From: Hyalangium minutum | Lineage (GTDB): Bacteria; Myxococcota; Myxococcia; Myxococcales; Myxococcaceae | Direction of reading: 5' to 3' | NCBI RefSeq assembly: GCF_000737315.1 | Contig: NZ_JMCB01000008.1 | Coordinates: 525,980-589,979 of the forward strand | Length of the DNA stretch: 64,000 nucleotides | Shown here: piece by piece, positions 1,942 through 3,384 of the stretch | Layout: each line of letters begins with the position of its first letter | How positions within the stretch are numbered: position 1 is the first letter of the stretch | Made by a program: the position numbers and the translations under genes | Notes under the pieces: model-generated | Database searches by the model: none | What the model was told of the DNA's origin: nothing | What the model saw: the letters and a program-made list of their open reading frames with translations, nothing else

Positions 1942-3384
1942 ATGAACCGATTCGCCGTCACAATGTTAGTGGTTACGCTGTCCGCGGGGGTGTGCGAGGC
2001 GTTGGGCTCCAGCCCGCCAGGCTACAGCGTTCAGATAACGCGCGCTGGCCTCGACCCCCTCATCAACGGCATTGCCAACCTGTCCGAGGCGTACGCCAAG
2101 AAAAGCCCTGCGCCGGACGCCACCATGGACATCTCTAACGTCCACTTGATCTTCAAAGGGATGAGCATCAGCACGTTGGAGCGGCCGGCGTTCGTGTACA
2201 CGTTGCAAGCACCGAACAAGCTCCTCACCAAGGTCACCTTGCCCAAGGTCATCATCAAGGGCCTCTTTCAGGCGTCGCGACGGACGCAATTCGAGACGCA
2301 AGAAGATCAAGGCAACGTCGACTTCACCCTGGTCAACGCCACGCTCACGCAGTCCGTCACCCTCGGCACGTTCGAGAACGGCATCCTGAGAGTCGACCAA
2401 CGCGACTGCAAAGCGACCCTCGGTTCGACCAACGTGGCCATCCAGAACAACCAACAATCATTCTCGGCCGATGCAGTCAGGGCAGCCGCCCCAGCGGAAC
2501 GGCAACTGCTCGCCACGAATCTGTGCAACGTGTTGACCCAGCTGCTGACGAAGAAAGTGGACAGGGCCCTGGCTCAATTGCCAAGCGTGTTGAGCTTCAG
2601 CAACAACGTGTCGTTGAAGGGGCAGCTCACGCCGGCCTTCACAGTCGACTCTGTCAAAGTGAACTTCTCCGAAGAGAGCATCACCGGCTTCGCCAGTGCC
2701 TGGGCGCCGGTCCTGTGCGACACGAGCGTGGCAGGCAGTCCGCAGGCCATCCTGACCGTGAGCGACGTCACGTTCAACAAGCTCTTGTACCTGGATTACA
2801 AGAGCGGCCTCTTGAACTTCACCCTCTCGCCGTCCAGCGCGCCCATCCTGTACCAGAAAATAACGTTGGACTGCGGCGAGTCCGGCGTGTGCCTGGGCAA
2901 CGTGGACAAGAAGTTGCCCGAGCGCTTCGGCAAGGACGCAAAGGTCGAGCTGCAGATGGAAGCGCCCATGGCGTCCACCCTCGAATTCAAAGAGAGCAGT
3001 ACCGCCATGACGGCCAGCTGGCGCGCCACTGTCTACATCACGAAGAATCAAGAGGGCGCCCCCCGGACGCTGGTGGCCAGCGGCGCTGTGTCCGCCAGCG
3101 GGCCGCTGCAAGCGAACATCCAAGGCGAGAAGGCCTACGGCAGGGTGAACATCGCGGAGCTCAAGCTCAAAGTCGATCAGCCCGAGGTGCAATCCTGGGA
3201 TCAGGACGCCCAGAGCCTGTTCAAGGACATCGTCCAAACCTACATCAACGATTTCTTCTTGAAAGACGGACTCTCGTTGCCGTCGGGACTGAGCGTCGAG
3301 AACGCGAGCATCAAATTCAGCCCCCACTGTGGGAAAGCGCCGTTCAGCTTGGACTACACGGGAATCTTGAGCAGCGAAGAATGA
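1942..3384 (+). CDS. Secreted BPI/LBP/CETP-family (TULIP) lipid-binding protein, two domains
   Basis: Signal peptide. [14 protein letters not shown] parallels BPI [21 protein letters not shown] and NLCNVL give the conserved N-domain Cys pair; [26 protein letters not shown] parallels the BPI C-domain start; 480 aa is full-length BPI size. Confidence 0.7.
   Translation: [480 protein letters not shown]

Follow-up and report, generated by a model that had tools for sequence, protein, structure and literature searches.

Identification of a BPI-family gene in Hyalangium minutum

The window analyzed in this work is a stretch of 64,000 nucleotides (nt) from the myxobacterium Hyalangium minutum (contig NZ_JMCB01000008.1, positions 525,980 to 589,979 of the forward strand). 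Near its beginning lies an open reading frame (ORF) that the original prediction, made from the sequence alone, described as an animal-type lipid-binding protein of the BPI/LBP/CETP family residing in a predatory bacterium. BPI and LBP are textbook eukaryotic weapons and sensors against Gram-negative bacteria. On the evidence of sequence profiles and a predicted structure, the encoded protein is confirmed as a genuine full-length two-domain member of the BPI/LBP/CETP family, of the eukaryotic type. The ORF list contains the gene with the limits, strand and length originally proposed (Table 1); the frame is uninterrupted, lacks introns and specifies a product of 480 amino acids (aa).

The architecture of the protein was delineated by a combination of Pfam searches, an AlphaFold2 (AF2) model and a "clade-only" profile, which was built from the bacterial proteins and their sister sequences without any named animal BPI in order to avoid circularity. 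The predicted signal peptide has the features of a typical Sec signal without a lipobox, which agrees with the earlier assignment of the protein as secreted, a prediction made here by heuristic rules: residues 4-17 are hydrophobic (mean Kyte-Doolittle value 2.17) and form the sole strongly hydrophobic segment of the protein, the AF2 model places this region in a separate low-confidence helix (3-20), and homology to mature BPI in the clade-only profile begins at P25-G27, opposite BPI N2-G4. A lipoprotein reading of the segment 'SAGVC' was dropped, as Val at position -1 is atypical and the Cys is missing in the Corallococcus orthologue. In the model, the N-terminal barrel comprises a strand (28-33), helix A (34-53), a long beta-sheet (60-168) and helix B (173-211), and it is followed by the strands of the central region (216-245) and a lower-confidence loop (246-268).

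Six cysteines of the mature protein are kept in the bacterial clade and fall into the pairs C156/C195, C311/C317 and C259/C463. The positions of C156 and C195 are conserved in at least 90% of the 28-sequence alignment used for the model, the bond itself being predicted from sequence. The C-terminal barrel contains the loop pair C311/C317 (2872-2874 and 2890-2892) and C463 (3328-3330). C259 is invariant across the bacterial clade and in P0006, a marine relative, which is the only sequence outside this clade with the C259/C463 pair. The six residues probably form three disulfides in the oxidizing periplasm, C259-C463 included.

Table 1. Coordinates of the BPI-family gene, its parts and the adjacent features in the window
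Feature	Coordinates	Strand	Basis and details
Complete BPI/LBP-family gene	1942..3384	+	ORF list; ATG start; 480 codons plus stop; Pfam, clade-only profile and fold match
Sec-type signal peptide (predicted), residues 1-20	1942..2001	+	Heuristic: MNR n-region, hydrophobic core, VCEA/LG end
N-terminal TULIP barrel, residues ~21-212	2002..2577	+	AF2 secondary structure; aligns with BPI 2-~190
C156 (2407-2409) and C195 (2524-2526), canonical BPI disulfide pair	2407..2526	+	Aligned with BPI C135 and C175
Central beta-sheet/linker, residues ~213-270, including clade-specific C259 (2716-2718)	2578..2751	+	Model
C-terminal TULIP barrel, residues 271-480	2752..3381	+	Pfam LBP_BPI_CETP_C 271-440; Cys conservation
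Upstream relic: right-handed beta-helix gene, 5' part missing, frameshift near 1653	1181..1856	+	Pfam; open frames
140-aa lipoprotein-like ORF (LMAC lipobox), convergent, partial CarboxypepD_reg	3414..3836	-	Pfam, 26.6 bits
tRNA-like minihelix fragment (acceptor stem and T-arm)	977..1024	+	One of at least 5 copies in window 1-42300

Family membership and fold

Similarity to the BPI family exceeds chance in each of three approaches. The Pfam family of the C-terminal domain, PF02886 (LBP_BPI_CETP_C), matched residues 271-440 with 41.7 bits against a cut-off of 23, and was matched by all 14 clade members. For the N-terminal domain, PF01273 (LBP_BPI_CETP) gave 22.5 bits (E 1e-4) over residues 124-202, which is below its cut-off of 28.8, and E<=0.01 was reached in just 3 of the 14 members; of the two Pfam families originally named for checking, the C-terminal one was thus recognized above its cut-off and the N-terminal one stayed under the threshold. 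The clade-only profile matched human BPI (1BP1) collinearly from end to end, residues 23-472 onto BPI 2-455 (E 2.2e-20), including the BPI N-domain residues 2-230, and also matched LBP (E 5e-11), with no match to CETP at E<=1 among the PDB sequences. A phmmer search with the single protein against PDB sequences returned nothing useful, and profiles were needed.

The AF2 model calculated from a 5-sequence alignment had a predicted local distance difference test (pLDDT) score of 54 and was discarded; a 28-sequence alignment was used instead and yielded a pLDDT of 87.6 and a predicted template modeling score (pTM) of 0.77. With this model, Foldseek ranked 1BP1 on top, ahead of LBP and CETP (E 3e-28 for 1BP1, with template modeling (TM) scores of 0.73/0.76 over 470 columns), whereas the bacterial TULIP proteins OrfX, P47 and YceB gave TM scores of 0.14-0.33. 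The predicted structure is therefore a BPI-like boomerang of two TULIP barrels, as the original prediction anticipated. The match of the clade-only profile is the more independent evidence, since the AF2 alignment contains animal BPIs.

The BPI-like landmarks listed in the original prediction occur in the stated order, and each of them aligns with human BPI or with the invertebrate BPI consensus. The LAQLP motif lies opposite FQTLP of BPI, and the C311..C317.G..(P) segment fits the invertebrate consensus 'LnttCkegvClGklip..YPn', a loop absent from human BPI. The label "nematode-type" attached to this segment found no support: the named animal matches closest to the protein come from molluscs, a hemichordate and a frog, with no specifically nematode sequence among them, and the C..C.G motif is a common property of the sampled invertebrate sequences, being present in at least 90% of alignment A2.

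Distribution and bacterial relatives

A word-indexed search of 5.8 billion clusters retrieved four relatives: P0002, P0003 and P0004, with 63%, 55% and 43% identity to the window protein, and a fragment. P0004 is a protein of Corallococcus llansteffanensis annotated as a "hypothetical protein". A profile search via the word-indexed database found no further relatives. When all 1.84 billion representatives were searched with HMMER, 50 proteins were obtained at E<=1e-3, of which approximately 10 are of the bacterial type. A scan of 185,579 bacterial and archaeal species genomes (one genome per species), based on two short peptide patterns that detect close relatives only, located a single gene, in C. 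llansteffanensis CA051B. The family is thus rare in bacteria, rather than widespread and vertically inherited, the outcome named beforehand as fatal to the proposal. All named matches beyond the close clade are animal BPI/LBP proteins, from Anadara, Elysia, Gigantopelta, Mytilus, Solemya, Saccoglossus and a frog. The sole sequence returned by a metagenome scan, L007, was set aside as an assembly chimera in which the 5' part of a BPI gene is joined to unrelated high-GC DNA, and only its 5' leader was used. No description of a BPI-family gene in myxobacteria was found in the literature searched.

Two of the relatives, P0016 and P0018 (L012 8001-8816 and L013 886-1629), contain the N-domain only and share 35-38% identity with the bacterial BPI clade over residues ~1-205. 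Their contigs come from the same assembly, are gene-dense and have 60-64% GC, and P0018 carries a tandem SKIPKPEDA insertion. C-domain similarity was sought downstream of both genes and was not found in any frame; these proteins may be single-TULIP derivatives or remnants.

The eukaryotic sister group

A distance tree with bootstrap values unites the four bacterial proteins in a single clade (100%) and places this clade with P0006-P0009, likewise at 100% bootstrap, apart from the animal sequences. The nearest relatives outside bacteria are P0007, P0008, P0009, P0010, P0013-15, P0017 and P0020, located on contigs L003, L004 and L008-L011 of metatranscriptomic and genomic origin. They show 26-33% identity to the window protein (E 1e-44 to 1e-68), and the signal-peptide end 'VCEA' is common to both groups.

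This sister group is eukaryotic, because its member on the genomic contig L011 has a 63-nt phase-0 GT-AG intron, which contains in-frame stops (GTAATGA...CTTTTCTACTTATAG) and splits one gene into two gene calls within the conserved FNDVAYQ/AYAND motif. Splicing restores a full-length protein of 496 aa, and the next 3 kb are devoid of long ORFs. Genes of the P0007, P0008 and P0009 types occupy single-gene contigs of 1.6-1.75 kb, where the ATG lies near the beginning of the contig, directly preceded by an A-rich leader; GC content at third codon positions (GC3) is 0.67-0.81 in their coding regions, and their flanks have 21-36% GC, as compared with 61-72% in the flanks of the bacterial loci. Contigs L003 and L009 are near-identical from 'GTTGTTTGGC' on (14 mismatches in 1595 nt), with a shared body and 3' untranslated region (UTR), and have unrelated 5' ends that lead to different N-termini (P0007 versus P0053); alternative first exons may account for this difference, or else one of assembly by chimera formation. 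The eukaryotic genes differ from the bacterial ones by introns, AT-rich UTRs, lower ratios of nonsynonymous to synonymous substitution and the lack of the C259/C463 pair, as well as by a cationic N-domain in P0007 and P0008 (+13 to +15; +6 in P0009).

Rate of evolution and maintenance of the gene

The ratio of nonsynonymous (dN) to synonymous (dS) divergence was estimated by the Nei-Gojobori method among the four full-length bacterial genes (43-63% identity). Within the bacterial clade, dS is 0.29-0.44 and dN/dS (omega) is 0.87-1.15; the three codon positions have diverged to the same extent, and each window of 40 codons gives an omega of 0.7-1.6. The same code applied to eukaryotic sister pairs gave omega of 0.37-0.54 at dS of 0.5-1.2. 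Saturation caused by the high GC3 (0.84) was considered as a source of artefact and dropped: the observed proportion of synonymous differences (pS) is 0.24-0.33, as against 0.88 at simulated full synonymous saturation, and the sister pairs yield their low values with identical code.

All four orthologues nevertheless retain open ORFs of 475-482 codons, with invariant cysteines, glycines and core motifs, whereas neutral drift simulated to the same divergence creates 7-9 stop codons, the probability of none being at most 0.003 for each gene. Since the frames are intact against the drift expectation and dN/dS is about 1, the gene appears to be maintained under loose constraint. The rapid change, measured on four sequences only, fits either diversifying selection acting on an extracellular protein or a gene that is of marginal use and often lost.

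Charge of the N-terminal domain

Both bacterial killing by BPI and lipopolysaccharide (LPS) binding by LBP depend on a cationic N-terminal tip. The N-domain of the window protein (residues 21-245) has a net charge of +3 (pI 8.9), in comparison with +14 (pI 9.7) in human BPI 1BP1; the values are +2 to +4 throughout the bacterial clade, and three BPIs from molluscs range from +13 to +23. The whole mature window protein is acidic (net -3). In the tip segment, KWKAQKRFLKMS of BPI is replaced, and R112 alone is kept across all four bacterial orthologues. The strongly cationic N-domain and the clustered Lys/Arg tip that mark the bactericidal BPI subgroup are thus absent, and a bactericidal mechanism is unlikely for that reason. 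The suggestion that the protein might permeabilize outer membranes loses ground accordingly. By its charge and by analogy with characterized homologues, the protein is more likely to be an LBP/PLTP-like lipid shuttle than a bactericidal protein.

Genomic setting

The gene was proposed to lie in an accessory block between two gene relics. The first part of this description is supported, as the gene adjoins a broken gene in a repeat-punctuated region. The second part holds on the upstream side, where a beta-helix gene is truncated at the 5' end and frameshifted: its Pfam Beta_helix match (40.6 bits) covers profile positions 62-156 only, and its two open stretches, 1181-1654 and 1653-1856, lie in adjacent reading frames. 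On the downstream side, the convergent ORF has only about half of a CarboxypepD_reg beta-sandwich (profile positions 1-46 of 82), with a score below the cut-off of 32.3 bits. Neighboring genes are different at every homologue locus, for instance lectin and response-regulator genes at L001 or a SUKH gene and a beta-barrel-like ORF at L006. A conserved partner gene was sought among the neighbors of the four bacterial loci and none was found; the gene therefore has no conserved operon partner. At L001, the metagenomic locus of the closest homologue (P0002), the lectin gene (254-1963, plus strand) lies directly upstream; its product of 569 aa combines an MVL mannan-binding domain with three scytovirin lectin domains.

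Copies of a tRNA-like minihelix recur on the plus strand at 62-100, 935/977-1024, 18513/18647-18694, 24233-24272, 36136-36183, 36399/36533-36580 and 42235-42282. They are 48-90 nt long, have the T-arm GCGGGTTCGATTCCCGC and score 22 bits with the Rfam tRNA model (cut-off 29 bits); five matches were obtained, as opposed to none expected by chance. Three copies share 90-180 nt, with 96% identity between 18513-18692 and 36399-36578. ARAGORN detected no intact tRNA and no tmRNA in the whole window. The repeats could be att scars that serial integrations left in a stack, or members of a repeat family derived from a tRNA; the reading as an integrated island is only tentative, because the ORFs scanned at 9.6-18.6 kb, in the segment that carries the BPI gene, included no integrase. 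Two defense-type genes, for an OLD-family ATPase with a TOPRIM domain (18435-20861, plus strand) and an AAA_21/AbiEii-like ATPase (32903-35089, plus strand), each lie just 3' of a minihelix copy or of the repeat pair 16206-16407 / 32428-32628 (90-96% identity).

Genes for Ser/Thr kinases and Kelch/TSP3 proteins abound in the window, which also encodes a sigma-54 activator. The BPI gene is followed by genes for two large secreted Kelch beta-propeller proteins (3607-6630 and 6712-9072, plus strand) of eukaryote-like extracellular architecture, one with 14 thrombospondin type-3 repeats, to which thirteen tandem repeats of 108 nt correspond in the DNA (4888-6483), and the other with PKD/Ig domains. 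A 979-aa protein (21080-24019, plus strand) combines, in an unusual architecture, two protein-kinase domains around a PNP_UDP phosphorylase-superfamily domain. A lone CRISPR-DR23 repeat match (39796-39831, plus strand; 46 versus 45 bits), with no array around it, may be an orphan repeat or a chance match. An enzyme from the core region of the window, a long-chain acyl-CoA ligase (48657-50336, minus strand), is 86-88% identical to its best named relatives, from Hyalangium gracile, H. versicolor and H. rubrum, which marks the host as a Hyalangium-like myxobacterium. It is also 77-80% identical to many Cupriavidus/Ralstonia proteins (Betaproteobacteria), which suggests inter-phylum transfer of this fadD-like gene.

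Origin and maintenance: competing explanations

The GC3 of the BPI-family gene (0.84) is within the range of its neighbors (0.82-0.85), a cluster record places the gene on a 590-kb contig, and homologues reside on other high-GC contigs with bacterial neighbors such as a response regulator or a SUKH protein. Eukaryotic DNA wrongly joined to a bacterial contig might account for the animal identity of the nearest named relatives beyond the close clade and for an overall gene GC of 0.60 below that of the window (0.656). However, host-like GC3, the absence of introns and bacterial flanks on both sides within one 64-kb window exclude contamination and imply long residence in the host, and independent homologues on three other high-GC contigs, one of them an isolate genome, leave mis-assembly with a negligible probability. 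Published work describes the BPI/CETP family from throughout the eukaryotes and infers that their common ancestor already had it (PMC5507252), and the bacterial TULIP proteins in the literature are remote families (PMC6791001, PMC5507252). Transfer from a eukaryote is favored by this distribution, in which the family is eukaryote-wide and the bacterial TULIPs are either remote or, like TipA of Bdellovibrio (see below), divergent. The reciprocal monophyly of the two subclades in an unrooted tree and the occurrence of TULIP folds in bacteria (PMC5507252, PMC6791001) would also be consistent with vertical descent of an old bacterial BPI lineage that was lost on a massive scale, or with transfer from a bacterium to a eukaryote, the eukaryotic sister group being the recipient. 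Such a history is very unlikely in view of the handful of bacterial-type clusters among 1.84 billion representatives and the single locus that the scan for close relatives located among 185,579 species genomes, the presence of the family across eukaryotes and in their inferred ancestor (PMC5507252), the low silent-site divergence of the bacterial clade (dS 0.29-0.44), and the cationic N-domain, an ancestral feature that the eukaryotic sisters share with animals and with respect to which the bacterial clade is derived. The "ancestral" origin offered as an option at the outset thus becomes improbable, and its other option, horizontal acquisition, is the best reading of a gene that is rare and patchy in bacteria, stands in an accessory setting and has an intron-bearing eukaryotic sister. 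Judged from these sequence comparisons, horizontal transfer from a eukaryote to a myxobacterium is the most likely origin. A viral vector was also considered, and no BPI-like fold was found in BFVD (all TM scores below 0.15).

With respect to the present role of the gene, it may be asked whether it has one. A functionless passenger, acquired and now drifting towards loss, would be uninformative on myxobacterial biology; it would account for the near-neutral dN/dS with equal divergence at three codon positions, the fragmentary or single-domain relatives on other contigs, the accessory setting beside a pseudogene and the extremely patchy distribution. We consider this explanation unlikely, because four uninterrupted ORFs of 475-482 codons are not expected under simulated drift, the six cysteines, glycines and core motifs are invariant, and the fully ameliorated GC3 points to long residence. 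Slightly less probable is a BPI-like bactericidal effector, that is, a secreted protein that binds LPS of the prey via its N-domain and permeabilizes the prey outer membrane. It would suit the full BPI architecture and fold, a host from a predatory group, the conservation in all four bacterial orthologues of R112 in the N-terminal tip hairpin, opposite KAQKRF of BPI, and the combination of dN/dS near 1 with intact ORFs expected of an arms-race effector; TipA, moreover, destabilizes membranes (bioRxiv 10.1101/2025.09.09.675085). The weak charge of the N-domain and the acidity of the mature protein argue against it, as do the exposure of the Gram-negative producer's own membranes to such an agent and the lack of an immunity or partner gene nearby.

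Proposed model and its significance

The explanation that we regard as probable for the observations as a whole is that an intact eukaryotic-type BPI/LBP gene was captured from a eukaryote and encodes a lipid carrier, extractor or sensor. According to this model, a myxobacterial lineage would have acquired a BPI gene horizontally from a eukaryotic donor, perhaps a protist or a small invertebrate, to whose BPI genes the sister group would correspond; the gene would then have adopted the codon usage of the host and spread patchily, as an accessory gene, among a few myxobacteria. The Sec signal would take the protein into the periplasm, from where it might proceed to vesicles or the medium. Its apolar pockets may bind acyl-chain lipids (LPS/lipid A, phospholipids or similar), and by analogy with LBP/PLTP or TipA the protein may carry, extract or sense lipids, rather than kill through a cationic attack on membranes as neutrophil BPI does.

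Several observations weigh against this model. Sequence constraint is weak, as shown by dN/dS of 0.87-1.15 in the bacterial genes in comparison with 0.37-0.54 in their eukaryotic sisters, and the truncated or N-domain-only relatives P0005, P0016 and P0018 point to frequent decay. The direction of transfer is deduced from distribution, because the tree is unrooted and its bacterial and eukaryotic groups are reciprocally monophyletic and not nested one within the other. P0006, which is encoded on a marine contig of 40% GC behind an extended -10-like (sigma-70-like) promoter, may represent another bacterial lineage. The AF2 model, finally, is not independent of the animal BPIs contained in its alignment.

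A more specific scenario is possible and, in our estimation, doubtful: a predatory myxobacterium would have captured and domesticated a BPI/LBP immunity gene from a eukaryote of the soil food web, stripped it of a cationic charge harmful to the producer and added a disulfide suited to the oxidizing periplasm, and would release the product, freely or on vesicles, as an effector for extracting or sensing LPS and lipids of the prey; the protein would be under diversifying selection (omega about 1 with intact frames) in an arms race with prey envelopes, in convergence with TipA and with an independent eukaryotic origin. A canonical, Pfam-recognizable BPI in a bacterium, with intron-bearing sister genes, is a clean candidate for the transfer of an immunity gene from a eukaryote to a bacterial predator, and culturable myxobacteria together with a small soluble protein constitute a tractable system. 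The gene raises the questions of what role a BPI fold plays in a Gram-negative producer, whether loss of the cationic tip is the cause of producer tolerance, and whether lipid extraction by double-TULIP proteins is a general tool of bacterial predation. High dN/dS with intact frames also makes it a test case for an arms race versus slow decay after transfer. If the gene is a drifting passenger, it is only a curiosity of genome annotation.

Comparison with known systems

Animal BPI/LBP proteins, as represented by BPI (1BP1/1EWF), mouse LBP (4M4D) and the mollusc proteins of Anadara, Mytilus and Elysia, belong to the same Pfam family as the window protein and share with it a signal peptide, ~455-460 mature residues, the N-domain disulfide pair and collinearity from end to end. 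The two TULIP barrels with a central sheet are likewise common to both, as judged from the predicted model (TM 0.73-0.76 to 1BP1), and invertebrate members have the C..C.G loop as well. The window protein differs from them by its bacterial host, low identity (16-24%), weakly charged N-domain (+3 versus +13 to +23), additional conserved C259/C463 and dN/dS of about 1.

The bacterial TULIP families YceB/DUF1439, DUF4403, DUF2140, DUF2993 and P47/OrfX (PMC5507252, PMC6791001) have the fold in common with the window protein. In contrast to it, they are remote, detected by profile or structure only, mostly single-domain or otherwise arranged, and widespread in bacteria; the window protein has no Pfam match to these families, and its TM scores are 0.14-0.33 in comparison with 0.73 to BPI.

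A double TULIP protein in a predatory bacterium is no longer without precedent, since TipA (Bd2538) of Bdellovibrio bacteriovorus, which acts with the adaptor TipB, has been published as a secreted BPI-like double TULIP that holds lipids and was shown to bind and destabilize bilayers (bioRxiv 10.1101/2025.09.09.675085). TipA was annotated as DUF2785, has ~570 aa (traced to residue 566) with dimerization hairpin and helix inserts, superimposes on the BPI domains with a root-mean-square deviation of 5.7-5.8 A and shares its operon with TipB, a beta-sandwich protein (bioRxiv 10.1101/2025.09.09.675085). As a lipid-holding double TULIP of a predatory Gram-negative bacterium, it offers the best functional analogy for the window protein. 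TipA did not appear among the PDB matches of the model or of the profile. By its published description it nevertheless appears to be set apart: the window protein has the canonical BPI length (480 aa, with no room for the inserts) and direct Pfam BPI matches, and gave no Pfam match to DUF2785 at E<=10. No co-directional TipB-like partner was found; the one beta-sandwich ORF in the vicinity (3414-3836) converges on the gene, scores below the Pfam threshold and is missing at the homologue loci L001, L005 and L006.

CETP and PLTP (PDB 2OBD) share the family and the predicted fold (Foldseek E 6e-22, TM 0.67), and the window sequence is closer to BPI/LBP (profile E 2e-20 with 1BP1 and none at E<=1 with CETP). 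These proteins are shuttles of neutral lipids or phospholipids without a bactericidal cationic tip, and for this reason they are the functionally nearer model for a weakly charged member of the family. While the family itself and TipA were already known, what is new here is the unexpected host and the probable cross-domain origin of the gene.

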